From Mytilus californianus (taxonomy: Eukaryota): DNA of 64,000 nucleotides. Where the stretch lies: positions 43,462,001-43,526,000 of the forward strand of contig NW_026262745.1 in assembly GCF_021869535.1 (NCBI RefSeq). Reading direction: 5' to 3'. Positions 3,751 through 62,569 of the stretch are shown here, piece after piece. A program made the position numbers and the translations under genes. How positions within the stretch are numbered: position 1 is the stretch's first letter; each line of letters opens with the position of its first letter. The notes below the pieces were generated by a model, which worked only from the letters and a program-made list of their open reading frames with translations, was not told where the DNA came from and ran no database searches.

Positions 3751-6114
3751 TTATCCTGCAATTAATTCTGTATATTGTTTGTGCTTTGAAAGACACAAAA
3801 ACTCACATTTTTTGCATTTATTTTCGATTTAAAATCCCTTGAGGCCCGTGTAGTAATATTAAAATCACACATTCAGCTGGAGACGGGTTCGCAAAAAAAG
3901 AATCTCGAATGGTCAACAATAATACATCGCTCAAAGTGAATAATTATCTATTTTAACATAAAAACTAATTTCAACAGTAAAAACAAATAACAAAACATTG
4001 TACAATTTGAAACAGAAGTGTACGAGTTGTCCTACGCTTCAGAATTTTGAACTGAACTTGACATTCACTTAACATGCATGCTGAAATTGACATGGTTGAT
4101 TTTGTTACACATGTACACATTCAAGTTTTGAAATCGATGATTGGCATCGTAGAAAATACTACTGTTCATGTTTGTCTGTTATTAGAAAATTCGTTTGATT
4201 CTTATTGCTTTAAAGATATGTTTGAAAACAAACAGAACGTATAAAAGTGATCGTTAGTTCGCATACGTCATTGGAATGCGACTGCAATACACATTCTGGG
4301 GTCACGCAGGTTCATACAACACTCGTCAACAGCAATACACAAATGTAGTCCGGCAGTGGGCGGAGCTTTAAAGCGATATCTGTATAGTATACAGATACAG
4401 CATAGCGATATCTGTAGGGCTGTATCTGTATAGTAAGACACCCAATTACAGGATAAATATATATAAACACCATACGATGATGCCAAGGGAACGTAATCAT
4501 CTGAAAGTTGATAATTAACAATTATAGCAAATGAAAAATCATCTTTTATCGTTAATTTTAGTATTTTACAAGCGTCCCGTTAGAGATATAGATATCAAGA
4601 TTTAGGAAAGTGTAGTGTTTATTGTTAGTATTAGCTTTATTTAAAGTAAGTTCATCAGGATAAATTTCTTTAGTGTACATACTGAAGTCGTCATTATTGT
4701 GTATAGCTAATGATTATTTGTGAATTATGAGTGTAGGCTTAAATTGAATTTTATTAGCTTCTTACTTATATGCCCAGTCTATATGTTTTTCGTTGTTCGA
4801 CCAATTGTGAATTAATTTATAAATAATTAATCTTTTTTTATGATTTTAATTTTACCTTTTCATAAAGCCAAATGAGTATATCAAGCAGCACATAATCATA
4901 ATTGGCAATGATTTGAAAAAAAAAGTACGAAAGTATGATTTTTTGTTTCAAACCTGTATAAAAGCAGAATATATAATTTTTCATTATTAGCAGTAAGTTT
5001 TGTTTAATTCAGTCAAAATAGGCTCAAAAACATTGCTGATGTATCATTTGCTTGCAAGTCAATAACGCAACATCATTATTTAACCTTTGTTTGAGATGTG
5101 TTGCATATTTGCTCAGTTCACGAAACGAGTGTCAGCTGAAAAGTGAAACAAGGACAGGCAGCAGCAGGACTCAGACAAGCCAGGAATACACACGAAATGG
5201 CGATACTTTATAACGATTCCAGACATTGTGTATTTATGGTGCTAGTCCTAAATTGTAGGCGGCCGGGGATCTATGAAGCAGGGGAAAACATTTCCCCCCT
5301 ATACATCGGGAAGAAATTTTCATAGACGGCCACCGGTCAAAATAAATATTTGTTCTATTCCTACAAACAAAGTAAAATACTAGCTGTTGTTATAAGGTCC
5401 TTTAGTTAGTTGTTTTAGCAATTTAGATTTAATTGATGTACAGGTAACTAAGTTAAAGAAAAAAAAAAACTCCTTTTTACTTATTTATGAAGACTTATGA
5501 TTATATTAATAATTGATAAAAAATGAATGCATTGCTGAGAATAAAATAGAAAATTAAATATGGAAATGTACTTTGAATTTATATAAAATTATATACCTCT
5601 ATGGAGTTATTTTCTTTCAGAACGATAGTTCTTTCTTTTAAAGAATCATCAACCCGGGCGATACCAAGTTTCAATGAATATGTGCTTCAAGGCATACATT
5701 AGTTTAATAAATCATTTAATTCATTTGATAGTGGTAAATTTTCCATTTAACATTTTAGGCAGAATCATTCCTTTCATCCGTTTACTATACTGACATATCA
5801 GAAAAAGTCTGGTCTACTTTTACAAATTGTGACTTGGATGGAGAGTTGTCTCATTGGCACTCATACCACATCTTCTTATATCTATTTAATCTTTAATCAC
5901 AATCAGAGTTTCTCTCTAGCCTCAAGAAGAGACACGTTTATTATGCCAGAAGAAGATTCTCTGTAGTCGAAACCAATGAATGAAAACCAGTTTTTGAAGT
6001 CGGAAGACGATATTGATACTACGACAGCTGATGCACTTTCCTTATTAATCTGTTCATTAAATAAGGCCCTACGACGAAAAAAAACAGTAAACGGCAAAAC
6101 TGCACCACAAGTAA

Positions 6115-6594
6115 GATATAGCCGGGTAAAATGGCGTTCCGGCTAAATGGAAATCAAGAAGGAATATTTCGCTCCTTCAACTTTATTTTAGCAGTCCGGC
6201 AAGACCGAACAACAAACTCAAAACTAAATGTAATGTCACATACAAACAATAACAATATATATAAGCACAAGCAATTAAAGGATTAAGAAGATTAACATAT
6301 GCCAAATAGAAATAACAATAGATTAGAAGAGTAATTAATGTCCGACACGTATAGGTAAATTATTGTCTAAACTGTTACAGAGAATAAATAATCAAATGAA
6401 TAGAGTAAATGAATTTAAGTCCTTTGTCCAAGATTATGACATATAATCCGTGTAAAACACTTATGCCTAAATTTACGACAAAGTTCAGAATAATAAAATA
6501 AATGCAAAACCTAAATATACATTAAAACAATTGAATAAATAAAATGTTGTTTAAAACTATTTTCACACTGCACAGTCCAAATAGTCCGGTCATA
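6115..6594 (-). repeat. 3' LTR-like direct repeat
   Basis: Matches 7543-8022 with 4 substitutions. Confidence 0.9.
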
Positions 6595-6635
6595 TATTCC
6601 CGCGGCCCTTGAAGACACGACCCGGGTCTTAATGT

Positions 6636-7463
6636 TCATCTAAAATTATGGTTCCGAAAGTTTCTTCTATGGTTGTGGCGTCCTCTGTAACGATAGTTTT
6701 GGTTTGGATGATTATCTTCTCTTGTATTATTTCGAAAATTATCTAATTCGTCTTCTAGTTTGGTGATTCGATCCCGCATATGCTCTTTGTCGCGTTGTAA
6801 TTGGTATTGCTGGTCGATTGCTTCACATCTTTGATCGTAAATCCGAAAATTAGCTTCTTCAAGATCAGTAATGCGTTCCCGTAATTTTTCCATATCTTTT
6901 TTATCATCTGCACCTTGTTTTTGAAGTTTTTCTAGATTGCTAACAACACTGGTATGCTTTTGATTTAACTCTTTAAACTTCTTCTCATAGTGTACACTTT
7001 TGATTTTAAATTTTACTCTCTCTGAATTCACTCGGTCGTGCCTGAGTCTAACGTTATCTATAAATTCCCTATTATAATCTAAGGTTGGAAAGAAGTCCAT
7101 CAGTTCAATAGTATTGAGTTCCGCACAAGGAAAAATTGACATAGCTTTCTGTTCTTTGAATTTTCTCATTCTTTCTGCGTCACGACGTAACTTGGATTTC
7201 GATTTAACCTTAACAACTTTCACGTCCGGTTGTCTGTGAAAATAACACATTCTGGCGTAATGTCCAAAACTTCTGCACTTATAGCAAAATGACGTTTTTG
7301 CTATACATTGTCTAAAATGAAATTGATTGTTCACAGTCTTTCCACAAAACTTACATAGGTAGTTGTCCATATGTTGAAAATTTCTTGTCTGAAAGGTAGT
7401 TCCATGATCAGACATCTGGTATCTGCAGTCTCGGCCAAAATTTCTGGTTCTCCGCGTATCCAT
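6636..7463 (-). CDS. Gag-like protein (275 aa): N-terminal CCHC zinc knuckles, long coiled coil, Arg/Asn-rich tail
   Basis: Intact ORF. CKFCGKTVNNQFHFRQC-IAKTSF-CYKCRSFGHYARMC is the double-knuckle arrangement of gypsy-type gag (second knuckle C-X2-C-X4-H-X4-C). Heptad-like charged region around aa 150-245; the C terminus is RYRGRHNHRRNFRNHNFR. Confidence 0.8.
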   Translation of the reverse strand: MDTRRTRNFGRDCRYQMSDHGTTFQTRNFQHMDNYLCKFCGKTVNNQFHFRQCIAKTSFCYKCRSFGHYARMCYFHRQPDVKVVKVKSKSKLRRDAERMRKFKEQKAMSIFPCAELNTIELMDFFPTLDYNREFIDNVRLRHDRVNSERVKFKIKSVHYEKKFKELNQKHTSVVSNLEKLQKQGADDKKDMEKLRERITDLEEANFRIYDQRCEAIDQQYQLQRDKEHMRDRITKLEDELDNFRNNTREDNHPNQNYRYRGRHNHRRNFRNHNFR

Positions 7464-7542
7464 TTTTCTGTTTGCTGGGGGGTCAGCTTCACAGGTAGAG
7501 TAAGGTATCCGAAAGATGCGTTGCCCGGATGTTCTTACACCA

Positions 7543-8022
7543 GATATAGCCGGGTAAAATGGCGTTCCGGCTAAATGGAAATCAAGAAGGAATATTCCGC
7601 TCCTTAAACTTTATTTTAGCAGTCCGGCAAGACCGAACAACAAACTCCAAACCAAATGTAATGTCACATACAAACAATAACAATATATATAAGCACAAGC
7701 AATTAAAGGATTAAGAAGATTAACATATGCCAAATAGAAATAACAATAGATTAGAAGAGTAATTAATGTCCGACACGTATAGGTAAATTATTGTCTAAAC
7801 TGTTACAGAGAATAAATAATCAAATGAATAGAGTAAATGAATTTAAGTCCTTTGTCCAAGATTATGACATATAATCCGTGTAAAACACTTATGCCTAAAT
7901 TTACGACAAAGTTCAGAATAATAAAATAAATGCAAAACCTAAATATACATTAAAACAATTGAATAAATAAAATGTTGTTTAAAACTATTTTCACACTGCA
8001 CAGTCCAAATAGTCCGGTCATA
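7543..8022 (-). repeat. 5' LTR-like direct repeat
   Basis: Matches 6115-6594; followed on the minus strand by a TGG-initiated PBS-like sequence. Confidence 0.9.
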
Positions 8023-9442
8023 AATATCTGATAACTATAATACAAGCAATAACGCCAGTGCTCAACCATCTGCAGTTGATTCTAGCCTTCGTCTCTTGAC
8101 TTTAAATAGATAGAAACTAAGATTCGGTTCAACACTGGCCGTATTTCAGCTTTGAGAAGGGTTGGACTTTTGATTAAGTTCGAGTCGAACAATACAGTTG
8201 ATACACAGTCAATTATCAAAACTTAAATTGACAATTTGAACCAGCGTAATAAGATTTTTAAAATCGCAGATCGCCGTGGTGAAATACAGTTCACGAATAT
8301 CTGGATGATTCTCTCGAAAATGTTTCTATTGGTGAAAGACGCAGTAATTACGTGTAGATTGTTAACAACTGAACAGTTTATGTAGAGCGGGTTGGTCCTA
8401 TCTAATCGAAAGCAGACTGTTTATTGTAATTTTACGTTCGTCACTTAATGCATACTGACAAAGTAAACGTTCATGCTATTTAGTGTTGTATTCATATAAT
8501 TATGTTCAGTTTTTTGGTTTTAGTGATTGCTTTATTTTTGCAGAATAAAGAAAGTGATGACACGGTAGTTTTCCGTCTTTTTAGAATAGATTCGTTGCCT
8601 TGTTCTCTGAAATCTAATTGTTAATTTTGTTTTTGGTCATGCTTATGTAGATTGTATATTGAACGGCTAAGACGTAGTACTACATTTTCCACCAATACCT
8701 ACCCAATTTACAGATATATGTATCACACAGGATTTTTTTCACGGATATTTATTAGTACGAACTTAAAGGGTCTTTACTCTATAATTGTATGCATGTTTCA
8801 TGTCAGCAGGTACTTTTTTAGCTTGCTTTTAGTAGATGGGAACTATCTTTATATATAGAATTACCAATAATTGTTGTGTGTGTACTTGTGTTAATGTACA
8901 CCATGTAACGGTTAGGAGTAATTGTTTTCCTGCACTGATATTGATTGCATGTTCCTTGCCTGCCTCTTTGTAAGTCAACTTATTGAAATTTAAAGGAGAT
9001 GTTAAAAATTACATAAAACTAGTTTTATAGTAATAACGCCAGATGTTCTTGTGACCTGGCTTGACCATAAACACAATAAGTGGTTGTCGTATGCCAAATG
9101 ATAAATGTTTTTGTTATTTGAAGACTTCGATGTAGATGGCAGATTTATTCACAATTGCTTAGACTAGTATCTTGCTTGACATACATGTATATAGACATCA
9201 ATACTGTATAATTACCACTAGATGGATCGTTAACGATTGAGTCGTTGGGTTGATGTCTCATTGGCGAGAATCCTACTTCTACTTTTATTCATACAATATG
9301 TATTTGTTTTTGAGGTTACGTTTGGGGGGGGGGGGGGGGGGGGTAAATGAATACGGCAAGTTTTTTTTGTACGTGTATACTTCACGCATATGACTAAGAA
9401 ATTAATTATCTGGCTTATATATGCATTGAAGCCTTAATAATC

Positions 9443-9897
9443 TATGGAACGCCATAGCTGTCTTATGTGTCTTTTTTATTGCTTTTCTATTATACGAAGA
9501 TGCTTTTCTATTATACGATGGTGGTTTTCTATTATACGAAGGAGGTTTTCTATTATACGAAGGTGCTTTTCTATTATACGAGGGTGGTTTTATATTATAC
9601 GAAGGTGCTTTTCTATTATACGATGGTGGTTTTCTATTATACGAAGGTGCTTTTCTATTATACTAAGGTGGTTTTCTATTATACGAAGGTGCTTTTCTAT
9701 TATACGATGGTGGTTTTCTATTATACGAAGGTGCTTTTCTATTATACGATGGTGCTTTTCTATTATACGATGGTGCTTTTGTATTATACGAAGGTGCTTT
9801 TCTATTATACGATGGTGCTTTTTTATTATAATAAGGTGCTTAATTATTATGTGATGGTGGTTCCCGTGATTAACCGGAAGTGTGGAGTTTATTTGAA
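9443..9897 (+). repeat. Left TIR containing a 21-bp tandem array (about 17 units, consensus GAAGGTGCTTTTCTATTATAC)
   Basis: Array at about 9482-9860; whole segment is the reverse complement of 15379-15857 and 14930-15378. Confidence 0.95.
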
Positions 9898-9997: not shown

Positions 9998-11870
9998 GAT
10001 TTTGTACCGCTTAATGGAGTCAAAAAGCGAGACATAGGTATGCTGTTTCCGGCGGCGTCAACAATGTATTAGTTTGTGATTAGGTCTAGTTTATGGTGAA
10101 GCCCTAGTGATACGTTAAAGATATTTGGTATGCAGTTGTATTAGTATTGACATATCTCATTACCATGGAGATTATTGGCCATGCCCCCTCAGTTATGGTC
10201 TATTGACTCTGAAATTATTCCTAAGAATCATGTATTAGTTTGTGATTAGGTCAATTATTGGGGAACCAATAGTGGTAAGTTAATGATACTTGGTAAGGAG
10301 TTGTATATGCATTGGCATATCTTATTTCCATGGAGATTATTTGGCCCGTCCCCTCAGTCATTGTCTATTGACTGAATTTTTTGTTTAGTTTTTATGGAGC
10401 CTGCGACTTTTCACAGAAAGCTCGACATATGGATAGTGATCGGGCGGCGTTAGCTAACTTATTAAAAGCTTTATATTTTAGGTGGAAGACCTGCATGGAT
10501 TGTTCATACTTTGTATATAGATGCTCAATGATACTTAGTTTCCGTCTGTCACATGGCCTATGTTCTTAACCCAATTTTCATGGTTCAGTGACTGCTTGAA
10601 AAAAAAGTTATGATTTTTTGTAATGTTAATTTCTCTCTTATTATGAGTAATAGGATAACTTTATTTGGTATGTGCGTACCTTGTAAGGTCCTCATGCCAG
10701 TCAGACAGTTTTCACTTGACCTCAACCTCATTTCACGGATCAGTGAACAAGGTTAAGTTTTGGTGGTGAAGTCTTTATCACAGATACTTTAAGCAGTAGG
10801 TCCAGTATTTTTGGCGTATGGAATGATTGTAAGGTGTACATGTCCATCTGGCAGGTGTCATCTGACCTTGACCTCATTTTCATGGTTCAGTGGTTATAGT
10901 TAAGCTTTTGTGTTTTGGTTATTTTTTCTTATACTATAAGCAATAGGTCAACTATATTTAGTGTATGGAATAATTGTAAGGTGTACATGTATTTCTTGTT
11001 TGGTTTATATTACCTTGACCTGATTTTTATACTCATGTTTATGTGATAGTTAGGCTTTCTATTTAGGACTATCAACATATTATCAATGTTTAGTAAAGAA
11101 GGCGAGACATTTCAGTGTGTGCACTCTTCTCATGTATTAGTTTGTGATTAGGTCAGTTTATGGGGAACCACTAATGGTAAGTTAATGATAATAGGTATAC
11201 AGTTGTATACGCATTGGCATATGCCATTTCCATGGAGATTATTTGGCCCCGCCCCTCATTCATGGTCTATTGACTTTGAATTTTTTGCTTAATTTCAATG
11301 TATTTGTTTGTGATTAGGTCAGTTTATGGGGAACCACTAGTGGTAAGTTAATGACAATTGATATGCAGTTGTATAAGCATTGGCATATGTCATTTCCATG
11401 GAGATTATTTGGCCCCGCCCCTCAGTCATGGTCTATTGACTTAAACTTTTGCTTAGTTTTCATGCATTAGTTTGTGATTAGGTTGGTTTATCGGGAACCA
11501 CTAGTGGTAGGTCAATGATATTTGGTATGCAGTTGTCATAACATTTGTTCACCTCATTACCACAAAGATTATTTGACCTTGCTCCCTCAGTTATGGTTTA
11601 TTGACTTTGAAATTTTGCTTAGTTTACATGTATTAGTTTGTGTTTAATTTTGTTTAAAGGGAATTATGATAAGTCAATGGTATTTGGTATTAGCATTGGC
11701 ACATCTCATTTCCATGGAGATTGTTTAGCCATGTACCTTCAGCCATGGTTCATTGACTTTGAATATTTGCAAAACTTGCATGTTAAAGTGTTGCTATTTT
11801 AATTTCAACATATGCATTATAAAAATTACCAATAAGGGAGACATATCTCTATGATAACAGTTTATTTATT
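9998..11870 (+). mobile_element. HINE/pearl-like non-autonomous element with about 6 internal 165-bp tandem repeats
   Basis: Starts in a T-run with aagcgagacataggtatgctgtttccggcggcgtc. Units begin (c)atgtattagtttgtgattaggtc at about 10065, 10231, 11131, 11297, 11461 and 11627. Ends with gggagacatatctctatgataacagttt. This architecture is typical of bivalve Helentron-associated interspersed elements (family assignment is inference). Confidence 0.65.
10391..11128 (+). mobile_element. Second HINE-like element nested in the 165-bp array
   Basis: Interrupts unit 2 at a T-run, and the array resumes at 11131. Has its own tgaccttgacctcattttcatggttcagtg repeats and a terminal ggcgagacatttcagtgtgtgcactctt. 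Confidence 0.65.
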
Positions 11871-13573: not shown

Positions 13574-14918
13574 TTAGTTATTTCTTTCAATGACTTCCAA
13601 ACATTCAAGATAATAATCTATTCCAAAGTTAGTATTGCTTCTTATCAATTGTCGAGTTGAATCCAGCCTGCATTGATCACTTATCATGCGTGCAAGGGGT
13701 CCAAATATTAGTCTCTCGCCCTCTTCTACATCATTTTGATCCACATAGCCTTCAATTCCATAATCTTGCAAATTTGCTTCTCCTTCGGTAATTCCTACGG
13801 CATTTTGAAGTTGTCCTGAAGTCCACAAGCTCAATGGAGATGAATTAACAGTGCGTAGTCTATGACCAGCCCATGCCTCTGCCAAAAATTGAAGCTTCCT
13901 GTTTAGTTCGTCCATGAAAACAAAGTGGAGAGCAGCTAAGTTTGTCAGTTTTAGTGGGTCTAGATAACCTTCATCTTCCATGAAATAAAATAAGTTGTAA
14001 AAGTAACTAAGCACACCTTCATACACATCTCTCCATAGTCTCTCAATCCGTTGATTATGAGTGCTTTTTCCCGTTACCATACTGTTGGGCCTTTTTGAAT
14101 CAACATGTAGTTTGCCACAGAAACATTTTCCAATCCTTTGTCAGACCTAACTTTATTGGGTATCCCATACTTTGCATCACCGGAGAAGAAACGATCCAAA
14201 ACTGTTCTTGATGTGTTGTTGTCGGTACATTTTAAAAATGTTATCAATCGACTAAACCCGTCAATGCCACCTACAATAACAAATCTCCACCGGACAAGTT
14301 TATGATTTGTATCTATGTGCCAGAGGTGATTTGGACCAATTAGATTGTAAACACGCCTATTAAGCCTACCAGTACGTCTCGCCTGTACACCGGCGGTATC
14401 TAATCGATGCATACACTCCCTAGTCTCCATCTCTGTACTCTTATGCCTTTTAATAGAAGCATCTGTTGCAATAGTGTTTCGCCACACAATGGAAACTCTT
14501 TCATTATTTGTCCAAGTGTCAAGTCTAAATCACTGTCATCAATTTGTGTAAAATTCATTTTGCTTAATCCAAACTGTGACATTCTTCGGTAAATGGTGCT
14601 TTCAGACACGGACAACAATTTAGAAATGTCGGATATTTTAAATCCATTTTCAAGAACAGACTTTGGAATATCAAATTTCGGAGGGCCGCATTCAGAGTTT
14701 ATTTTATTAGGGGCAGACGTTCCATATTTTACACATTCAGTTCTTAACTTCATCATATCTGCCCTACTAGATACACCTAATATTTCAATTTCATGTGTCG
14801 AAAGCCTACATACAACGTCTGGAGTGATTTTCTCTCTCTCAAAGTTTAGAAATGCTTGCTGCAAGTTTAATTTCTGTAAAACGTTTAACATTTTAGTATT
14901 CACAGCCATGGCCGCCAT
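13574..14918 (-). pseudogene. IS3EU/IS481-like integrase-core (DDE) transposase, two frameshifts
   Basis: Three overlapping ORFs (14918-14400, 14487-14074, 14080-13574) join into one protein: HTH (FKISDISKLLSVSESTIYRRM), GPNHLWHIDTNHKL..GGIDGFSR, VRSDKGLEN, GKSTHNQRIERLWRDV. Single-base losses at about 14420 and 14085. Confidence 0.9.
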
Positions 14919-14958: not shown

Positions 14959-15378
14959 TAATCACGGAAACCACCATCACATAATAAAAAAGCACCTTAT
15001 TATAATAAAAAAGCACCATCGTATAATAGAAAAGCACCATCGTATAATAGAAAAGCACCATCGTATAATAGAAAACCACCTTCGTATAATAGAAAACCAC
15101 CATCGTATAAAAGAAAAGCACCTTCGTATAATAGAAAACCACCTTCGTATAATAGAAAACCACCATCGTATAATAGAAAAGCACCTTCGTATAATAGAAA
15201 ACTACCTTCGTATAATAGAAAAGCACCTTCGTATAATAGAAAACCACAATCGTATAATAGAAAAGCACCTTCGTATAATAGAAAAGCACATTCGTATAAT
15301 AGAAAACCACCATCGTATAATAGAAAAGCACCTTCGTATAATAGAAAAGCAATAAAAAAGACACATAAGACAGCTATG
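14930..15378 (-). repeat. Inner copy of the right TIR with 21-bp array (about 17 units), lacking the terminal 10 bp
   Basis: Ends ...cagctatg and then restarts at acattcaaatacacgcc (15379). Confidence 0.95.
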
Positions 15379-15857
15379 ACATTCAAATACACGCCACGCT
15401 TCCGGTTAATCACGGAAACCACCATCACATAATAAAAAAGCACCTTATTATAATAAAAAAGCACCATCGTATAATAGAAAAGCACCATCGTATAATAGAA
15501 AAGCACCATCGTATAATAGAAAAGCATCTTCGTATAATAGAAAACCACCTTCGTATAATAGAAAACCACCATCGTATAAAAGAAAAGCACCTTCGTATAA
15601 TAGAAAACCACCTTCGTATAATAGAAAACCACCATCGTATAATAGAAAAGCACCTTCGTATAATAGAAAACTACCTTCGTATAATAGAAAAGCACCTTCG
15701 TATAATAGAAAACCACCATCGTATAATAGAAAAGCACCTTCGTATAATAGAAAAGCACCTTCGTATAATAGAAAACCACCATCGTATAATAGAAAAGCAC
15801 CTTCGTATAATAGAAAAGCAATAAAAAAGACACATAAGACAGCTATGGCGTTCCATA
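15379..15857 (-). repeat. Outer right TIR with 21-bp array (about 18 units)
   Basis: Ends cagctatggcgttccata, followed by the TSD ataatc. Confidence 0.95.
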
Positions 15858-15932: not shown

Positions 15933-17140
15933 TTAAAGTCTTGTGTCTTCTATTATATCAGAATCGAGACCATTATAGTATCCATTGAGTTCATTAGATG
16001 TTACGCCTTTGAAGTCTGGTATCAAATTTGTAACACTTGTTGTCACATATACTTTCGTTTCTGACTTTTCATGTTCGATTTGCATATCTTTTTCTCTCTT
16101 TTCAAATTTCCCTCTATGCATTTTCACTATAATTGTCATTAAAATTGTAAAGAAAAGAACAATTGCCCCATAAAATGTCATTTGATGAAAAAACATGTCA
16201 TAACCATGATGCTGATAGAGATATCCAATTACCCAAAGGTATGACATGGCACCCAAAGCCATACCCATAACAATAAACGTTATGGCTACTCCAGTGACCT
16301 CAAGGTGAGCATTAGCCCAACCTAAGCCAGAAGGAAATATTGGCCCAACACATAATCCCATCATTATAGTTAAAATCCATAATGCCAAGTCGTTTTCATG
16401 CGCAAAAATTTCTAACAGAATTCCTGTAACTAAAGTTCCACACACTTCAACCGGAAGTAAGATACGAATTGGTATGAACCGTCCGGTAAATATACCAATA
16501 AATCGACCGACCGCAAAACTTATCCAGTATACGGTATTTATGAGGGATGCGTCATCGCCTGAAAATTTATGTTTGTCTATGGAATAACTTCTTATAAACT
16601 TTCCATACAAAGCGTCACCACCGCCTATATTAAAGAAACACAAAAATAACACAATGAAAATTTGAATACCAAACCATCTATCACCATCTGTACATGTTGC
16701 GGGATCGACTAATCTTACAACTTTCCGAAAGTTACTCTCCTTGGCGTCAACTTGTTTTTCTGGAGTTAAAATTATATGCCGAGAACAGAACTGATAAAAA
16801 TAATACACAATCGATACGGAAGCTATGACGATTGCAACAATCAAATATGCTGTCTCTATCTTGGATTCTTTTAGATATTCCATTGTAGTATTTTTATTAG
16901 TACTATTTGTACGCGGAAAGGGTGATGTGTTTTGTATCGATGTTACCAAAATATTTTGTACGAGAGATATATTTGGCATTACAGTTGAAGTGACATTTTC
17001 AAGTGACGGCGCCAACACTGCCAGGAATGGATTTGCTATTTGCGGAGCGAGGACTGATCCCATTCCAAACCCGAAGTGCAGAAGGTGTAAAGGTCCAGTT
17101 GCTTTTTTGTCCCATAGCTGTATGAGAACTCTCTGTCCGA
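15933..17140 (-). CDS. MFS transporter (MFSD4 / sodium-dependent glucose transporter 1-like), exon 3 of 3
   Basis: Acceptor tttttgcAG at 17142-17141, phase 1. Motifs GQRVLIQLW..LHLLHFGFGMGSVLAPQIANPFL, FFNIGGGDALYGKF and YWISFAVGRFIG, with multiple TM helices. The joined CDS is 108+292+1208 = 1608 nt (535 aa) with no stop. Confidence 0.9.
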
Positions 17141-17629
17141 CTGCAAAAATATGACAAACATAAGATATGTGTTTCATTGATGTAGCGGAATATCATAGTC
17201 ATCTTATAACAAGAATTTCCTTTGATAACAGTCTTAGTATTTGTTTTTGTTTTTTTTTTGTAATACAACATATAATACATTAGTCAGTAAGGAACGATTT
17301 GATTTATAATTTTAGTACATTTGTGTTTTATTCCTGATCTCAATTCATTGAAGAAAAATTATGTCATATTAAATACACCACAGTTTAAAGTTTTAGGTAT
17401 GCGCTCGAGACAACCTTTATAATATTGTGGCAGAGGTAAATAAATCCTTATATAATCTTGTTGGCTATATCGGTCATTTTTCAAGTTTTTGTCCCACTAC
17501 CATGTACTCCACATCTACTTTATTTTATAAGATCGATTGAAGTTCACGTCCCCCAATCAATTATTGGAAAAATAATCAGTATGACAACCAGAAATGAGAT
17601 ATAAATACGAATCCTATTCGATTACTTAA

Positions 17630-26265: not shown

Positions 26266-29200
26266 CGTTTTTGCTTATTCTCTTGAAAACTATAATAGAT
26301 AGATAGAAATATTAAAAAAGCAAAAAAGATCAGCAAGACAGAATCTTCAATATACCAGGATGGCCAGTCAGCTCTAAATTGGAGTTATTGCCCTTTAATG
26401 GTGATAATATACCATTTTTGTATAAAAGCAAAATTGATCAGCAAGACAAGATCTACGTTTAAATAAACTTGCCCAAATCTTCAGTCGACACCTTTTAGAA
26501 CAGATGATAAATGTACCTCTGATTTTTTGGGTATTTCTTTTCAATGCTTCGATACTATACAAGTCAATAAAAAAAAACTATAAACGACTTCAGAAAGAAA
26601 ACATTAATTCAACATTACAAATAAATCATAACAAATATTTAGTTATAACAAAAATTATCACCAACAATTTGTCGGACACGATAAAACGCGCAAAATCTGA
26701 AAATGTAACAAAATTCAGACGGATAACAGTTCCAGTACGCAATGTCATTTACGGGATTTACATGTAGTTTAAATCGGTATGACTCTTTCATGACGCAACT
26801 AAGACTTCCTATCGTCGACGCATAGATCCATTCAGTCTCTTGATAAAGTGAATGATGATGATACATTATTACAGAGTAGCGATTTGCAATTGTTCAGACT
26901 GTTTTCGATGCATTAGGGAAATAAATACTAATGTCTTTAAGTTCATCCCACAATGCTCGAAAGGCGATAAAGCCGATTACAATGCTGGCCATGGAAGAAC
27001 ACGAATCTAATGAGTAAAAACATAAATTATATGTGGATCACGTTACACCAGGGTGTTGTCTTGCTGCTTAAACGTCTACTTCATAGTTGTAATTAACTTG
27101 CGGTTTGATCAGATATTTGCAGTTGTTAGTTAATGTGCAAGGTGTCCTTACCGCTGATAGGAGTCGATTACGGAGACAAATTAATCGTATATCATGCATG
27201 TACAGACGCTGTGACGTCTCCCATGGAATACCACTATGCGGAATATCGGTCGTACTTCCTGTCTGCTGAAACGACTCCCCAATCTAGTTATTGTCCTCCC
27301 GGTATGCGTTTAATTGATTCACAGCGTCGTCATGGAGCATCTCACACTGCTTCATACTCATACATGTAGCGCATTCGCTATCCCTTCCATATAACTGTGG
27401 TGTCGTATTATCAATGTCTTTCGAAGGTTTTAGAAATAGCAAAATGTTTTTACATGACACCGTATACAAAATAACCTAATATGGTTTAAACAACTGTTTG
27501 TTATAGGGTGCATTCGATGATCCGGTGTTATTGACAATTCCATGATCGCGACGTTAGGTAAAAAGTATATGAAATTTGAATTATTGGTTTAAGAGAATTT
27601 CCATAAATAAACGATAAAACAATTTCTGATTAAACAGGAAAAAAATATCAAAAAAAATATAATCGTGCATCGTTCTTTTGTAGACTATCATGAAAATGAT
27701 ATATTTGGCTCATATTAATAATTTTCAGTTTTTTGTTTAATTTATTTTTTTCATTTTTACTAAAGTATATATTACAGGTCTTTCCGCTACCAAAATATAT
27801 GCCTGATTTTGGTCCTTCATACAAGTTATTTTACGAGCTGAATAAATCACGCAAGATGTTGAAATTGTTGTTATCTCTAAATCAACCATTGGTTTTAGCA
27901 TTTGCTAGAAGCGACTTTCTAGTCTTCTAGTTTCACCCCAAACCTCTGAAGATAATATATTTTTTACGTTGAAATCATTACTTTTAATCATATGCATGAT
28001 ATAAATACAGACGTCTGATAACAAGAAAAAGACCTTGATTCTAATTCCGGAAAGGAATTTTTATAATGTATTGATACCACTACTGCACTACAAAGATAAC
28101 CGTATTTTAAAAATGTTTAGTAGGTCGTGATGATATGTTATGTAGATACACCTTGGCTTGTCTAAATGTAATACTCAGAAATTTAGTACAAAATGGTGTC
28201 ATTTAGCTTTTTTTAACTTTTTTGATTCGAGCGGCAATGAGCCTTTTGCATGTTTTGTAGTCGAAACGCGCATTTGACTTAATAAATGTTAATGATATCT
28301 ATGATCAGTTTATTAATACGCGGATTAAAAGTTTTTAACTACATGACTATGGATAAAAAAATTCAGATACCATACAGTGGGAAATCAAGTCTAAAAAAAA
28401 TTACCCTCCTCTTTCAAATACTGAGAAATACAAATGTGCAATGTTTAATACATTCTCTGCGAGGTCGCTAATTAAAATAAGTTCACAAGAAAACGAAACC
28501 TTTGATAAATAGTAATGATGAATTAAATATTAAACAAAATCAGAATTACATGTACCATGTCATGGTATAATTTCCTACTTATTATGGCAATGCATCAGGC
28601 TATGGAAATATTGTATAAAATTGCTTTGAAATGTTGCTATGGGAATACATTTGTATTATTAAAAATGAATAATGACGGTATTTTGTCACCGAGGTTATCA
28701 TCAGTTCAATAGTTAGTTCGTAGGCACTGACATTCTTTATAAATTTTCCGTTGATAACTTTAGAAATTATAGATAAACTAACTTAAGGTTAACTAGCACA
28801 GGAAAAGTTGACTTAGATGGATTTGGTTATTATCTAAGGTCCGTTTTGGTCGTAAAGCTCTTCACATGTTTCGGTACTTGTACATCCTTGGCTCTGAAAT
28901 ATGTTGTTTTAAGCATTCCTGAAAAGTAAATCCAGACTAGCCAAATAGAAGGCCGTACTTTCACCTATAATGGTTTACTTTTACAAATTGTAACTTGGAT
29001 GGTGAATTGTCTCATTGGCACTCATACCACATACCATCTTCTTATATCTTTACAGTCAGTCGTAAACATAAAATTCATGAAGTGTTATTTTCATTTCCTT
29101 AATATCAACCTTAATGTATTTTTCTTTTGGCTTTATATGTTACTAAAACGCAAAAGTCCAGAGAGATTCAGAACAAATATCAACAAAATCTATTGATATG

Positions 29201-37687: not shown

Positions 37688-39217
37688 ATGATTGCCAGTA
37701 TTTTGTATGTTAGCATCCTTCTGAGTCACGTCATTATCGAAACTGATGCCAAGAAAATTTTGTTCCTGATGGCTCAATCAAAAAGTCATATGTTTCCGGC
37801 AATACCTGTTGCGGAGGAGATGGTAAAATTAAACCATACAACTACTTTTGTGGTAGCAGCTAGAATGAAAGAGGCGTTGGCATCTGAAGGCATTAAACTT
37901 TCACCTTCTATCATTTCAAAGAGTTTTGATAAGTATTATTATGAGGACATTATTCGAGTTACGCTTGAGAAAATGGCACAAGGTTCAAAAATTGAATCGC
38001 AGGTGAAATGGTTACAAGGAACTAACGCTCTTTGTCACGAATTTATGAATGATAAGAAATTGATAGACGAATTAAAAGACCAGAGATTTGATATTGCTGT
38101 TATAGACTACGCACCTGTTCTTTGTTTCACTATTATGGCATATAAACTAGATCTGCCATTTGTCTCTTTTGGTGCCTTCATAGATCCAACCTTAAATAGA
38201 GTTCCATTGAACCCAGCTTTCACGCCAACATTTTTTTCCGATTTCAATGATAAGATGACATTCTTGGAGAGAGTTTGGAATACACTCCGATACATTTTTT
38301 TAGTTGCTAGACCTGCAGCTCCAACGTTGGAGAATTTGGCAGTCAAGTATGTCCCAGAAAAACCAGCCATCTCTAATCAAGAAGCAAAACAAAAAGCTAT
38401 GCTTTATATACATGACAGTGACATTCTATTTGATTATCCACAACCATTTCCTCCAAATGTAATACTTTGTGGCGGTCTTGCTGCACATCCGTCAAAAAAA
38501 GTATCAAAAAAACTTGACACATTTGCATCATCAAACAAAGGCTTGGTAGTTGTTTCTTTTGGTAGTATTTTCAAAACATTTCCGAATAATACCTTCGGGA
38601 AAATGATTGAAGCTTTTAAACAAATATCTGATCTTAACTTTGTGATTCGACAAGGAGATACAGAGGAGACAACAGACAATATTTTGAGACTTCCATGGAT
38701 CCCGCAGAACGATTTACTCGGTCATCCCCGTACCGTTTTATTTATAACTCATTGCGGTAGGAGTGGAAGTATGGAGGCTATCTACCACGGAATCCCTGTT
38801 ATTACATTTCCCTTAAGTATTGACCAACCTTACAATGCAGCTGTTATGGAAGACAAAGGTTATGGTATCAAGATGGATTTACATGATTTTTCTACTGAGG
38901 AATTAATTGCCAATATTAAACAAGTAGCTTTTACCGATAAGTATAAGCGTAATATTAAGCAAGCATCGGACATATTCCACAGTCGCCCACAAACTCCTGC
39001 AGAAAGGGCAGCTTATCATATCGATTTAGTTGCCAAGCATGGTGATAAACATTTTCGACACTTTGGGATAGATATACCATGGTATTCGTTTTATCTTGTT
39101 GATGTTATATGCTTTCTTTTGTTAATGAACATAAGCTCCTCTGTCGTAATGTATTTAGTGTTTAGGAAATGCAGAAGACATTTGAAAAACAGAGCTATTA
39201 AACTTAAAAAAGAATAA
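37688..39217 (+). CDS. UGT: UDP-glucuronosyltransferase (GT1/UGT family), 509 aa, intron-free CDS
   Basis: Signal peptide; catalytic His in QSKSHMFP; UGT signature WIPQNDLLGHPRTVLFITHCGRSGSMEAIYHGIPVITFPLSIDQ; C-terminal TM helix and dilysine-type ER-retrieval tail (KLKKE). A tttttcAG acceptor 4 nt before the ATG implies an upstream non-coding exon. Confidence 0.95.
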   Translation: MIASILYVSILLSHVIIETDAKKILFLMAQSKSHMFPAIPVAEEMVKLNHTTTFVVAARMKEALASEGIKLSPSIISKSFDKYYYEDIIRVTLEKMAQGSKIESQVKWLQGTNALCHEFMNDKKLIDELKDQRFDIAVIDYAPVLCFTIMAYKLDLPFVSFGAFIDPTLNRVPLNPAFTPTFFSDFNDKMTFLERVWNTLRYIFLVARPAAPTLENLAVKYVPEKPAISNQEAKQKAMLYIHDSDILFDYPQPFPPNVILCGGLAAHPSKKVSKKLDTFASSNKGLVVVSFGSIFKTFPNNTFGKMIEAFKQISDLNFVIRQGDTEETTDNILRLPWIPQNDLLGHPRTVLFITHCGRSGSMEAIYHGIPVITFPLSIDQPYNAAVMEDKGYGIKMDLHDFSTEELIANIKQVAFTDKYKRNIKQASDIFHSRPQTPAERAAYHIDLVAKHGDKHFRHFGIDIPWYSFYLVDVICFLLLMNISSSVVMYLVFRKCRRHLKNRAIKLKKE

Positions 39218-41959: not shown

Positions 41960-44900
41960 TCGAGTAATGACATTTTATTGGAAATCTCTAGTGAGTTGGG
42001 ATTTTGTATCTATCAATTCGATTATTTAAAGATAGTTAGATCTTGAGACTTTCCCGAGAGTCGGAAGATACCAAGGAGATATTGAAACTCATAAGTCGAA
42101 GACAAGTCAATTATCAGTTTCTTTGATTTTCAGGTAACATAGTATCAGTAAATGAAGTCTTTTGAAGTCGATTCAGTCTATTATGATGTCTGTTAAACAA
42201 TGATTTATAGGTATAATGTGTTTATAAATAATTTTTCAGCAAGATGATTGCCAGTATTTTGTATCTTAGCATCCTTCTGAGTCACGTCATTATCGAAACT
42301 GATGCCAAGAAAATTTTGTTCCTGATGGCTCAATCAAAAAGTCATATGTTTCCGGCAATACCTGTTGCGGAGGAGATGGTAAAATTAAACCATACAACTA
42401 CTTTTGTGGTAGCAGCTAGAATGAAAGAGGCGTTGGCATCTGAAGGCATTAAACTTTCACCTTCTATCATTTCAAAGAGTTTTGATAAGTATTATTATGA
42501 GAACATTATTCGAGTTACGCTTGAGAAAATGGCACAAGGTTCAAAAATTGAATCGCAGGTGAAATGGTTACAAGGAACTAACGCTCTTTGTCACGAATTT
42601 ATGAATGATAAGAAATTGATAGACGAATTAAAAGACCAGAAATTTGATATTGCTGTTATAGACTACGCACCTGTTCTTTGTTTCACTATTATGGCATATA
42701 AACTAGATCTGCCATTTGTCTCTTTTGGTGCCTTCATAGATCCAACCTTAAATCGAGTTCCATTGAACCCAGCTTTCACGCCAACATTTTTTCCGATTTC
42801 AATGATAAGATGACATTCTTGGAGAGAGTTTGGAATACACTCCGATACATTTTTTTAGTTGCTAGACCTGCAGCTCCAACGTTGGAGAATTTGGCAGTCA
42901 AGTATGTCCCAGAAAAACCAGCCATCTCTAATCAAGAAGCAAAACAAAAAGCTATGCTTTATATACATGACAGTGACATTCTATTTGATTATCCACAACC
43001 ATTTCCTCCAAATGTAATACTTTGTGGCGGTCTTGCTGCACATCCGTAAAAAAAAGTATCAAAAAAACTTGACACATTTGCATCATCAAAAAAAGGCTTG
43101 GTAGTTGTTTCTTTTGGCAGTATTTTCAAAACATTTCCGAATAATACCTTCGGGAAAATGATTGAAGCTTTTAAACAAATATCTGATCTTAACTTTGTGA
43201 TTCGACAAGGAGATACAGAGGAGACAACAGACAATATTTTGAGACTTCCATGGATCCCGCAGAACGATTTACTCGGTCATCCCCGTACCGTTTTATTTAT
43301 AACTCATTGCGGTAGGAGTGGAAGTATGGAGGCTATCTACCACGGAATCCCTGTTATTACATTTCCCTTAAGTATTGACCAACCTTACAATGCAGCTGTT
43401 ATGGAAGACAAAGGTTATGGTATCAAGATGGATTTACATGATTTTTCTACTGAGGAATTAATTGCCAATATTAAACAAGTAGCTTTTACCGATAATTATA
43501 AGCGTAATATTAAGCAAGCATCGGACATATTCCACAGTCGCCCACAAACTCCTGCAGAAAGGGCAGCTTATTATATCGATTTAGTTGCCAAGCATGGTGA
43601 TAAACATTTTCGACACTTTGGGATAGATATACCATGGTATTCGTTTTATCTTGTTGATGTTATATGCTTTCTTTTGTTAACGAACATAAGCTCCTCTGTC
43701 GTAATGTATTTAGTGTTTAGGAAATGCAGAAGACATTTGAAAAACAGAGCTATTAAGCTTAAAAAAGAATAAAAAAACAATAGATATTTAAAGATTGTTA
43801 TTTTTCAAATGATTATCAATTATCACATACTGTACACGATATATAAATGAATTTATATTATTGTTTTATGTTTTAAGTGCGCTGTTGGATTATTTGTAGA
43901 ATTTGACGTCTACCTCTTATCTAATTCTATTTAGTCAAATATATAATCAAAATGCCCTATTTGACATCATATATAATGCAGTTCTACCGATCTAAATGAG
44001 GGAATGGATTTTTTTAACAGGTGAGTCTAAATTAAATTTTCCCATTGTTTCTCCAAGTACTAAAGTTATTGACTCTAAGCAATATGTTTTTCCCAAATGA
44101 AGTAAAAATATGTTAAACTAAAACTATATATGTAGCTATATATCGCCCAGTTGATTCGATATATCAGAGTTTCTTTTTTCGGTATGATTTCGTGATAGGG
44201 ATTACTGCTGACAAGGGGACCATGCGCTAATACGATATTCAAAATCCTCTTTACAATTTAAATCGCCGAACACGAATATTCAGCACCATTTCAATTCTTC
44301 GATCGCCGAATGACAACGTTGATGCCAAATTCTCCTGCACCACTACATTTGAGTTGAGGGATATGTATTAAAATATTCTAGAACTTATCACCTTTTAAAA
44401 AAACACTTTAAAATGAATTCCTGTAAACATGAATTAAAGTATGCTCAGATCTTCCTGGTTTTTACTAGCTCAATAAAACGAACCGTTTCTATGGAGCAAC
44501 ATTCCAGCAACGCCTGCATACGGAGTATATATATCTCCCAGTTGATACAATATTCTAGGACTCGCATTTCCTATCATGAATTATTTGATAGAGGGGTGCT
44601 GCTCACAAGGAAACTATTAAACCAATACTTCCAAGTGGGAAAATTTTACGGACGCCATCATGAGTTGGTTGACGGTTATGGAATATGTTTCACAGGTGAC
44701 GATGGATATATTCTAATTGTCGTAACTACAATCCCGTCCCCTTTTCCCCGAATGTGACCTACCGAATAAGACTTATCACCGAGTTTGTACTTTCATAAGC
44801 AATACATCGGGTGCTACATGTGGAGCAGGATCTGATTTCCCTTCCGGAGAATCTGAGATTACTCCCAGTTTTTGCTGGGGTTCGTGTTGTTCAGTCTTTA

Positions 44901-50079: not shown

Positions 50080-52473
50080 CACCGTGAACAACGACACATG
50101 CTGGGTGTTGGGTATTTTTGACACGGGGTGGTGATTTTGAAGCGGAGAAAAAGCGATCAAGGTAAGTAAAAGTATCAAAATTTATTTTTTGAGAATTGTT
50201 AGCACCAAATAATATATTGCATGGAAGGAACCGAACCATAATCTATTTCCAACAAGCAGAAGCAGACGTTTCCGGTGCTCATTTTTCTCAAACACCTCTC
50301 CCTAGTTTTCTGTGTTGCAGATTTTGAGACTTCATATTCAAGTTTCAGGATAAAAAACGACTTTTGGCAATTTTTCCCCGTATGATTTATATAGAAATGG
50401 ATTCCTATCATAAAATTGAACCAAATACCAGATTCCTAGTCAAAACATTTTGGTTTTAAAGTTGATTTGTCGTTCGGGGTGTCAGATTTTGCATCTCAAG
50501 GGGTTGAGGCATTCATTAAAACAAGGATAGATGTCCCTATAATTCAGTCTTTATCTGATAATTTATAATTCAAACACACCTACTCTGTTGTGATGACTCG
50601 TCACAAACTTAAAGTATTTCATTTGGCCCATATTTTTTTGTTGTTGAGTAATTAGATATAAGAAGATGTGGTATGAGTGCCAATGAGACAACCCTCCATC
50701 CACGTCAAAATTTATAAAAGTAAACCATTATGTATATTTTTAATGTTAGAAATAGAGTAAAAGACTCAGAAGTATTTTGTTTTATACCTGAACATGATTT
50801 GTTTTCCTTTTCAGTTACCATCATGGTCAGGAAGAAGTCACGTCTATGGCTTAATGCACCAAAACATGGAGCAAATTCAAATCCGGAGCAGACCTCTGTA
50901 TAAGTTTTGCCCGAAGCCGAAGCCAGCAACACCTAAACTTTATCAAATTTCTTCACCAGTTTTCTCTTCAAAGCATACGTGGACGCCGCAAAATGGACTT
51001 ACTCCGAAACGAATTGGCTTACTCACTCCACAGAAATACTTACCGGCATCTATATTTACAAATGACAATAACGCTATAAAAAGACCTGAAGAAGATAACA
51101 CATCAATTTTAATCGATCTAAAACAGCAATTAAAAATCTAGAAGAACATAATCTGGCGACCGATTTTCTTCCATTTATCCAAATTAATTATAAAAGAATA
51201 CAAATTTTCATTAGACAATATTTCCTTTCTTCTTTTCCTTGTTGGCTTGTATAGCTCAATACTATAATATTTGTATGGATAATTATAACAGATATATATA
51301 TAATACAAGTTTTAAAATATGCAGCTGCATTTCATTTTAAATGACCATAGAAACAGATGAATGCCAACATGATCTTTTTTAAACTTTCTTTACCCCAGTT
51401 TTTGATGGGGTTCGTGCTGTTCAGTCTTTAGTTTTCTATGTTGTGTTTTTGTACTATTGTTTTTCTGTTGGTCTTTTTCTATTTTAGCCATGGCGTTGTC
51501 AGTTTATTTTCGACTTATGAGTTTGAATGTCCCTTTGGTATTTTTCGCCTCTCTTTTAAGAAAAGAATGTAAATATAGATGCCAGTTAGTATTTCTGTGG
51601 AGTGAGTAAGCAAATGTTTCGGAATAAGTCCTTTTTGCGGCGTGCACGTATGCTAATGTAGAGAAAACTGGTAAAGAAATTTGATGACGTTTAGGTGTTG
51701 CTGGCTTCGGTCTCAGGCAAATCTTTTACGGAGGTCTGCTCCGCGTGTGTTTTTGCTGCATGTTTTTGGTGCAATAAGCCATAGCCGTGACTTCTTCGAA
51801 TTCCTGACCATGATAGTAACTGAAAAGGAAAAACAAATCATGTTCAGGTATAAACAAAATACTTTGAGACTTTTTCTCTATTTCTAACATTAAAAATGCA
51901 CATTACTCAAAAAACTAAAATATGGGCAAACTGGAATACCTTAAGTTTGTGATGAGTCATCATAACAGAGTGGGTCTGTTTGAATTACAAACTATCAGAT
52001 ATAGGCAAATCTATCCTTGTTTTAATAAATGCCTCACCCCATTGAGACGCAAAATCTGACACCCCGAGGGATTTACATTTCTATGAACAATTAGCTTTAA
52101 AAACAATAAATTTTGACTAAGAAGCTGGCATTTGATTAAATTCTATGATCATGGTGATGGAATTAATTTCTGTATAAATCATACGGGAAAAAATTGCCAA
52201 AAGTAGTTTTTTATCCTGAAACTTGCATATGAAGTCTCAAAATCTGCAACACGGAAAACTATGGAGAGGTGTTTGAGAAAAATGAGCACCGGAAACGTCT
52301 GCTTCTGCTTGATGGAAATAGATTATGGTTCGGTTCCTTCCGTGCAATATATAATTTGGTGCTAACAGTTCTCAAAAAATAATTTTTTTATCTTGATCGC
52401 TTTTTCTTCGCTTCAAAACTATCACCCCGTGTCAAACATAGCCAACACTCCGCATGTGGCGTTCTACACGGTG
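50080..52473. mobile_element. Foldback non-autonomous DNA transposon with about 900-bp inverted arms, CACCGTG ends and a 5-bp TSD (Transib/RAG-like signature)
   Basis: Arms 50080-51060 (containing a 79-bp insertion at 50653-50731) and 51568-52473; TAAAC at 50075-50079 and 52474-52478. Removing the element restores the LINE codons KKGDKHDHINYRPAS. Confidence 0.85.
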
Positions 52474-62080: not shown

Positions 62081-62569
62081 AATAGTTTCTCATCCTAAGT
62101 ATGCATAAATAATTGCCACTTGAATCTAAGCAATCAATTTATAATCATTGTAATGAAAATAATATCTGGTGTTATCCGAACAAAGGTGGTTAAAAATTTA
62201 TCTATCTTGTACTATCCTTAACATATTCGAAATAGTCGAATATAGTCATAAATATGAATATATGTCACAGGATAAAATATGGTCGATTATATTAGATCCG
62301 CCCTCACATTCTAATGATAACAATAAATGTATTTTTTCTAAGAATCTGTATAGTAACTTTGATTTGCAGACCATTAACGAAAGGCGTACCCAAATTATAT
62401 TTTGTTTTCCAATAACATACAACATTTTTGACTGCAAGTGCTTCTCATAACAAAGTAAAACGAATGCATAGGAAAATACACGAATAGGTTGATATATCTT
62501 GTTATTTCAGAGTTAATGATCAGAATTGAAGGGTTGAAAAATGGTTGATCGTACACATAATTTTAATAT

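Follow-up and report, generated by a model that had tools for sequence, protein, structure and literature searches.

How can a retroelement persist when its only gene encodes neither enzymes nor, apparently, a capsid? This question is raised by a locus in the window, i.e., the whole analysed stretch of 64,000 nucleotides from Mytilus californianus (contig NW_026262745.1, positions 43,462,001 to 43,526,000; GC content, 30-36%). The minus strand of the window carries a recent insertion of a non-autonomous, pol-less Mytilus element of ~1.9 kb, in which two direct terminal repeats enclose a single gene for a protein that joins a double zinc knuckle to a long coiled coil. We are highly confident that the element belongs to a mobile, multi-copy family under purifying selection. 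With respect to its way of life, we lean towards a young non-autonomous terminal-repeat retroelement, the protein of which, a nucleocapsid module plus coiled coil, would form a ribonucleoprotein (RNP) on its own RNA, with the enzymes coming from a helper.

The two 481-nt repeats (6114-6594 and 7542-8022) differ by 4 mismatches (99.2% identity) and are separated by 947 nt, all of which can be assigned: a 78-nt leader, an unbroken 828-nt open reading frame (ORF) of 275 amino acids (aa) at 7463..6636, which is the longest ORF in its part of the window, where GC content is 33-34%, and the mere 41 nt between the stop codon and the 3′ repeat. No Pfam match to a protease, reverse transcriptase (RT), RNase H or integrase was found in this interior, which has neither space for pol nor a remnant of it. 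An earlier note on this DNA had claimed terminal direct repeats of ~480 bp with ~99% identity around a single uninterrupted 275-aa ORF without protease, RT or integrase; the repeat comparison, the ORF list and Pfam confirm this description, and the near-identity of the repeats, together with the fully accounted-for interior, supports the note's view of a young pol-less terminal-repeat element. The 4 differences among 481 positions translate roughly into an insertion age of 1-4 million years under an assumed rate of 1-5 × 10−9 substitutions/site/year. No second copy of any part of the element is present within the 64-kb window. Short alternative-frame ORFs overlap the leader and the ORF start at 7371-7574 (plus strand) and 7331-7492 (minus strand). 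The features of the element, in the direction of the gene, are the following:

7542..8022, minus strand: 5′ terminal direct repeat, resembling a long terminal repeat (LTR), 481 nt, from the repeat comparison
7531..7542, minus strand: string TGGTGTAAGAAC, similar to a primer-binding site (PBS), overlapping the 5′ repeat by one base, its initial T
7464..7541, minus strand: leader, 78 nt, free of ATG together with repeat positions 354-481
6636..7463, minus strand: single ORF, 275 aa plus stop, from the ORF list and homologues
7245..7355, minus strand: pair of zinc knuckles, aa 37-73, a homologue of the nucleocapsid module of Gag
7080..7220, minus strand: basic helix KVKSKSKLRRDAERM..F..K (isoelectric point, pI, 11) and conserved FPC/LPF motif, aa 82-128, from AlphaFold and alignments
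6714..7076, minus strand: coiled coil, aa 130-250, ~17 heptads in one register, from AlphaFold and a heptad scan
6639..6713, minus strand: Arg/Asn/Tyr-rich disordered tail, aa 251-275, pI 12, from AlphaFold and composition
6595..6610, minus strand: weak purine-rich tract AAGGGCCGCGGGAATA, adjoining the 3′ repeat, from reading of the sequence
6114..6594, minus strand: 3′ terminal direct repeat, LTR-like, 481 nt, with AATAAA at 6182-6187

The protein and its family

Ahead of the knuckles, the protein has 36 N-terminal residues that AlphaFold models with low confidence. Knuckle 1 (C37-X2-C40-X8-H49-X3-C53) is non-canonical in its spacing; knuckle 2 (C60-X2-C63-X4-H68-X4-C73) is canonical and scores 18.5 bits with Pfam zf-CCHC, below the cut-off of 20.8. 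A helical, strongly basic segment (residues 77-110; pI 11.1) follows, the conserved FPC/LPF motif lies in residues 111-129, and residues 130-250 form a single helix of ~120 residues, in which the hydrophobic fraction at heptad positions a and d is 0.50-0.75, compared to 0.21-0.36 overall. The heptad register is continuous and identical in all scanned segments but one, which indicates a coiled coil of ~17 heptads. The tail (residues 251-275) is composed largely of Arg, Asn and Tyr and has a pI of 12. The AlphaFold model built from 11 sequences had a predicted local distance difference test (pLDDT) score of 63, and the one built from 59 sequences had a mean of 80, with 97-98 for the long helix and 73-90 for the knuckles; the helix at 89-109 is modelled with a pLDDT of ~95.

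Comparison by hhalign of 59 family members with 12 canonical Gag-type proteins yielded a probability of 98.3% (E = 1.2 × 10−14), and the match spans exactly the 46-column double knuckle (aa 30-79 of the window protein vs. aa 337-384 of P0099). The pieces of canonical Gag proteins that were recovered in the profile search likewise align only with query positions ~19-82. Among these Gag-type proteins, P0099 combines Retrotrans_gag with knuckles, P0094 and P0097 carry the knuckles upstream of an aspartyl protease, and P0171 has the order Gag-like domain, knuckles, protease, RT. The high hhalign probability over the knuckles implies that the N-terminal module is a true nucleocapsid homologue. Judging from these profile alignments, homology to Gag is confined to the knuckle pair, and the remainder of the protein is not a rearranged capsid.

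It is very probable that the protein has no capsid domain at all. There is no Pfam match to a Gag or capsid domain in the protein, a capsid fold is absent from both AlphaFold models, a sequence search of PDB returned coiled coils only, and Foldseek searches against PDB and BFVD returned no capsid, only knuckle proteins or retroviral nucleocapsids (E ≥ 0.002); on these grounds, we reject a cryptic capsid. The Gag order, capsid followed by nucleocapsid, is not found either, given that the knuckles occupy aa 37-73 of 275. The layout proposed in the earlier note, namely, nucleocapsid-like CCHC knuckles at the N-terminus, then a coiled coil and an Arg/Asn-rich tail, with no recognisable capsid, thus holds (aa 37-73, 130-250 and 251-275), but its term 'inside-out Gag' is an overstatement because only the nucleocapsid module is Gag-derived, whereas the rest is a coiled coil and not a permuted capsid.

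The closest relatives of the protein are all from Mytilus, with 17 Mytilus protein matches in a word search. The M. edulis gene models number at least 21; they fall into 4 clusters and are distributed over at least 17 scaffolds, and 12 of them are intact at 274-275 aa; fragments of the family in M. galloprovincialis also came up in cluster look-ups. For the window protein, which itself has no entry in the searched collection, identity is 82-87% with the M. edulis copies and 96% with a Logan fragment, and the pairwise identity among 13 full-length Mytilus copies is 79-98%. An HMMER search of 1.84 billion representatives produced 125 matches with E < 10−3 (30 with E < 10−10), nearly all of them stand-alone proteins of 250-370 aa that cover query positions ~36-260. 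The stand-alone architecture is kept down to ~20% identity, with a common layout that consists of a short N-terminus, the double knuckle, KS..K..RD..R...F...K.....LPF, a variable coiled coil and an RG/N-rich tail. The longer matches comprise arrays of knuckles (P0020, P0112), coiled coils alone (P0074, P0123) and P0181, which is the sole long cluster member and represents a copy interrupted by the RT tail of a long interspersed nuclear element (LINE). In none of the 125 significant matches is the knuckle-coil unit fused to a protease, RT or integrase. Members with species names come from Mytilus (including M. coruscus) and Pinctada (Pinctada imbricata) only, in the latter case from several chromosomes at ≥90% identity, and clusters without named members contain 9-25 sequences each. 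All that the annotation of the family proteins offers is 'CCHC-type domain-containing protein'. The spread over at least 17 M. edulis scaffolds and several Pinctada chromosomes agrees with the dispersed multi-copy family posited earlier, and the conserved stand-alone length, never joined to protease, RT or integrase, argues against a recent internal deletion of a gypsy element.

We gauged selection by stop-codon survival and by domain-wise conservation, with comparisons at the protein level. For neutral drift from the window's own codons, the probability that the frame stays free of stops is 0.05 at 85% aa identity and ~0 at 43% identity, with indels not yet counted. Frame and length are kept in the 13 full-length copies and in relatives at 43-49% identity, and the latter also retain all Cys and His residues. 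All 8 zinc ligands are invariant in 13/13 full-length Mytilus copies, variable sites are significantly rarer in the knuckle and basic module than elsewhere (20% vs. 38%; Fisher P = 0.006), and, compared to distant kin, the knuckles are 68-80% identical vs. 29-38% for the coil. About one third or more of the gene models are truncated, frameshifted or chimeric, as expected of a transposon family that mixes old and young copies. From these sequence comparisons, long-term purifying selection on the protein appears evident, and the stop-survival calculation, the invariant ligands and the intact state of 12 of at least 21 models agree with the earlier proposal that selection keeps the single gene intact.

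Scans of metagenomes (A2, A4), scans of viral contigs (A2, A4 and a pattern of LTR end and PBS) and scans of prokaryotic genome contigs (A2, P0165) returned nothing or unrelated single-knuckle matches. We rejected such matches as relatives, L001 being giant-virus-like and L002-L005 having only the knuckle in common with the family. One subfamily (P0048, P0050, P0063, P0067, P0078, P0083, P0096 and P0165) has a second knuckle pair C-terminal to the coiled coil, so that the position of the knuckles is not fixed across the family. A 50-aa family fragment, P0172, in the cluster of P0165, has been annotated in assemblies of the cyanobacterium Tychonema sp. LEGE and is probably contaminating animal DNA.

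Transcription, repeat ends and rival explanations

Each repeat contains TATATA at positions 332-337 (7686-7691 in the 5′ copy) and a single AATAAA at positions 408-413 (7610-7615 in the 5′ copy). An ATG-free stretch of 205 nt leads from repeat position 354 to the start codon, compared to 57-144 nt in the four preceding gaps between ATGs (P ~0.02 for a 205-nt run by shuffling). From the TATATA, the AATAAA and the ATG-free run, we infer a start of transcription in the upstream repeat and polyadenylation in the downstream one. The upstream repeat would then serve as the promoter, with a predicted start near repeat position 355-365, the 205-nt run would become the 5′ untranslated region, and the downstream repeat would supply the poly(A) signal, with polyadenylation ~20 nt beyond AATAAA. 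The resulting RNA of ~1.5 kb would be terminally redundant, as in LTR elements. This reading of the repeats as a transcription unit is a prediction from motifs.

With neither pol nor a capsid domain, the element must borrow its replication machinery. Under the explanation towards which we lean, the protein would bind the RNA that encodes it through the knuckles and basic segments and multimerise through the coiled coil to yield an RNP, and some autonomous element would supply reverse transcription and integration in trans. The protein would be a nucleocapsid-type chaperone with a zipper in place of the capsid, and its logic would be nearer to that of LINE-1 ORF1p than to that of a Gag that builds a shell. 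We see even chances for integrase-type LTR replication as opposed to another route, and the role of the protein in an RNP in cis is plausible, with chances slightly short of even; a gypsy helper, an adaptor role and a dominant-negative role are speculation.

As in LTR retrotransposons, the terminal repeats are long, direct and near-identical. A PBS-like string sits immediately after the 5′ repeat, with TGG directly abutting it. Several properties of the ends and of the other copies, however, weigh against the explanation that we favour. The repeat, which runs TATGACC...CTATATCT, lacks TG...CA termini, CA being absent from its last 20 nt (TATGACCGG...CCGGCTATATCT), and the inverted match between its ends is imperfect (7/9 only). 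The flanks (...ATCAGATATT / TACTTGTGGT...) show no target-site duplication (TSD) of 4-6 bp and at best a 3-bp TTA duplication, which requires that the boundaries be moved to TG...TC. The window contains no tRNA genes for comparison with the PBS-like string TGGTGTAAGAAC, which, by our own reading, has a complement without tRNA T-arm geometry past ~13 nt. The purine tract AAGGGCCGCGGGAATA is weak and interrupted, with 12/16 purines. In read-through gene models, the PBS region seems to vary in 2 of 4 other copies: in the 9-12 nt after TGGT, P0011 equals the window copy except for one residue, whereas P0001 and P0008 differ; this comparison was made at the amino-acid level and is skewed towards those copies that happen to be free of stops. 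The four repeat differences (6225, 6220, 6178 and 6169 in the 3′ copy) all fall within 57 nt (repeat positions 370-426, i.e., 7597-7653 and 6169-6225), from past the TATA to just beyond AATAAA, inside the predicted R region, with zero mismatches in the ~360 nt upstream. Such clustering has a chance probability of ~0.004-0.007 and is not what a single round of LTR replication would predict; a conversion patch could account for it, or the two repeats could stem from more than one cycle of replication.

The other copies are known from gene models and protein records. They include apparent head-to-tail arrays of three units (P0008) and two units (P0001), clustered copies on one scaffold (neighbouring models CAG2244713/4) and three copies of identical length on one 22.7-kb contig, and no helper element was identified; these points, too, count against our favoured explanation. 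In P0001, P0008 and P0011, which lie on other scaffolds, the models read from the repeat end through the leader into the ORF, with the repeat end and the later leader conserved, which indicates that the repeat-leader-ORF junction is part of the mobile unit. The P0008 and P0001 models have their splice donor at GTAAGT in codon ~37 of one unit; the acceptor, which is TTTAG in junctions of the P0008 type, lies ~30 nt short of where the next repeat ends, and from there the models continue through the leader and the ORF start. P0008, P0009 and P0011 translate alternative-frame ORFs over the leader and ORF start, which shows that automated annotation stitches adjacent units into false multi-exon genes. 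The leader and the repeat share no self-priming complementarity of ≥8 nt, and an empty-site search via paralogous flanks recovered only an unrelated ~80-bp interspersed repeat.

Given the non-canonical termini, the lack of a clear TSD, the weak polypurine tract (PPT) and the apparent variability of the PBS between copies, the reading of the ends as LTR, PBS and PPT in the earlier note is not secured: a PBS-like string does lie next to the 5′ repeat but seems to vary between copies, and a purine tract is present but weak and interrupted. The LTR label is therefore less secure than the element itself.

The same non-canonical termini, unclear TSD and uncertain PBS and PPT speak for the view that the upstream repeat is a pseudo-LTR, created by a head-to-tail partial tandem and propagated by target-primed reverse transcription with a Penelope-like or LINE helper. 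The true unit would then be 1428 bp long (leader, ORF and a 522-nt 3′ region), the upstream 'LTR' would be a 5′-truncated neighbouring copy, and the protein would be an ORF1-like RNP protein. The arrays of two to three units (P0001, P0008) and the clustered copies fit this view, as do properties of Penelope-like elements (PLEs): these are the most abundant transposable elements in Mytilus, some PLE clades have a coiled-coil ORF1 or a zf-CCHC upstream ORF, and non-autonomous elements derived from Penelope, for which head-to-tail arrays are typical, occur in large numbers in Mytilus and have been mistaken for LTR elements (PMC8557442). We nevertheless consider a pseudo-LTR, the main rival and one to be taken seriously, rather unlikely. 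An E-value scan of both strands of 5000-9200 detected neither a hammerhead ribozyme, a feature that Naiads lack, nor any other Rfam family; there is no inverted repeat or inverted truncated copy upstream; TGG directly abuts the repeat; and the TATA, the AATAAA and the ATG-free run suit an LTR transcription unit. Moreover, the knuckle module is of the LTR-Gag nucleocapsid type, and bivalve TRIMs (miniature retrotransposons with terminal repeats) are likewise reported to form tandem arrays and lack a canonical PBS (PMC6934838).

Clustering and tandem copies could also arise in a cellular or domesticated family of CCHC and coiled-coil genes amplified by local and segmental duplication, with the 481-nt repeat being the overlap of a 1.43-kb tandem duplication. 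Conservation of the protein across bivalves, with no annotation beyond its CCHC domain, and the failure to find either a helper or a TSD are compatible with such an origin, which we regard as improbable in view of the large number of copies, 79-98% identical to one another, on at least 17 M. edulis scaffolds and on several Pinctada chromosomes, the truncation, frameshift or transposon interruption of about one third to one half of the models (P0010, P0181), the joint travel of the repeat end and leader with the ORF, and the single exon set between repeats that carry TATA and AATAAA. Still less credible, in our assessment, is a simple deletion derivative of an autonomous element in which pol follows this gene, whether the gene serves there as gag or is a separate ORF1. 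The homology of the knuckle module to the Gag nucleocapsid of elements with protease and RT is in its favour, and partners encoded by separate ORFs would not be visible as fusions in a protein search, but 0/125 matches join the knuckle-coil unit to protease, RT or integrase, the LINE-tail interruption explains P0181 as the only long cluster member, 12 M. edulis models are the same stand-alone gene of 274-275 aa, only 41 nt separate the stop from the 3′ repeat, and the architecture is conserved to ~20% identity.

Returning to the young non-autonomous retroelement that we favour, this is an animal element in which nothing but the RNA-binding half of Gag is retained and is linked to a zipper, an arrangement that is old, widespread in bivalves and under selection. 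At least some terminal-repeat retroelements, this suggests, can do without a capsid shell. The knuckle-coil protein is a concrete test case for the cis-preference of non-autonomous elements. The ~100 clusters of bivalve models named 'CCHC-type domain-containing' are probable transposon genes, which matters for the annotation of mussel and oyster genomes. We also entertain the bolder, rather doubtful, idea that bivalves harbour a large unrecognised class of capsid-less retroelements with a nucleocapsid module plus coiled coil as the sole gene. If so, a protein of the LTR lineage would have converged on the solution of LINE ORF1p, an RNP instead of a particle; an element of 1.9 kb would tag its own RNA in cis and hijack the RT, and perhaps the integrase, of unrelated helpers; and a family of >100 clusters could hold active parasites of parasites as well as domesticated genes that modulate how active retroelements are.

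Neighbouring features and comparison with known systems

Elsewhere in the window, an interspersed repeat of ~45-80 bp, resembling short interspersed nuclear elements or miniature inverted-repeat transposable elements, lies at 5810-5890, 220 bp from the 3′ flank of the element, with further copies (81-91% identity) at 50646-50727, 28971-29049, 62563-62624, 2872-2918 and 59176-59219. Two mutually inverted arrays of the same 21-bp unit, at 9480-9841 (17 copies) and 14981-15820 (40 copies), bracket 165-bp repeats (10064-10373 and 11131-11646) as well as, on the minus strand, an ORF with an integrase core (PF24764, 13574-14080) and a stretch similar to a helix-turn-helix (14400-14918); together, these look like one large DNA-transposon-like unit. 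A 414-aa ORF on the minus strand (15933-17177; Major Facilitator Superfamily, E = 3 × 10−9) adjoins the inverted 21-bp array. Tandem UDP-glycosyltransferase genes occupy the plus strand, one as an intact 509-aa ORF and the other split into N- and C-terminal parts by an intron or break (37688-39217; 42244-42813 plus 43098-43772).

Troyka elements (PMC12440569) also occur in Mytilus, have 3-bp TSDs and non-autonomous derivatives, and contain a long-spaced finger, CX2CX8-10HX4C, comparable to knuckle 1 (CX2CX8HX3C); we rejected membership because the 5′-CG...CG-3′ termini (CGCCA...TGGCG) are absent. The split or inverted repeats of DIRS/Ngaro elements were rejected as well: there is no inverted repeat, and the sequences before and after the 3′ repeat differ. 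Non-autonomous PLEs with pseudo-LTRs, such as MRC1 (PMC8557442), have direct terminal repeats that lack LTR hallmarks, as does the mussel element, and they form head-to-tail arrays, as the mussel element appears to do; the mussel element, however, has neither a hammerhead ribozyme nor an inverted upstream copy. The bivalve TRIMs (biv-TRIM; PMC6934838), which belong to the non-autonomous LTR elements of the TRIM/LARD kind, are similar in host and in the absence of pol and of an identified partner, and apparently also in the lack of a canonical PBS and the coexistence of canonical and tandem forms, but TRIMs are <1 kb and non-coding, whereas the mussel element keeps a selected gene of 275 aa. 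The nucleocapsid of the Ty3/gypsy type (P0171, P0099) has the same composite double knuckle, CX2CG..H..C(P)A....CX2CX3GHX4C, located C-terminal to the capsid and upstream of protease and RT, in contrast to its N-terminal position before a coiled coil in the mussel protein.

Non-autonomous LTR-type elements that retain a structural gene have been described mainly from plants, and the gene in these TR-GAG elements is a normal Gag (PMC4350172). The mussel element is nearest in concept to them: both are <4 kb and have terminal repeats, a single Gag-related structural ORF, no pol and presumed mobilisation in trans. Plant TR-GAG elements, however, encode a GAG precursor with a capsid domain and show canonical LTR features, whereas the mussel element, from an animal host, has no capsid, is Gag-like in its nucleocapsid alone, and departs from several LTR hallmarks in its termini, PBS and PPT. 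With respect to the protein itself, LINE-1 ORF1p (PMC5940361) combines its coiled coil with an RNA recognition motif (RRM) and a C-terminal domain (CTD); Pfam, AlphaFold and Foldseek reveal neither RRM nor CTD in the mussel protein, which does not qualify as a type II LINE ORF1p and instead has its knuckle pair N-terminal to the coil, and the searches gave no match to such proteins in either sequence or fold. By functional analogy, it nonetheless resembles both LINE-1 ORF1p and the coiled-coil ORF1 proteins of PLEs (PMC8557442), which are capsid-less, RNA-binding and multimerise through a long coil.

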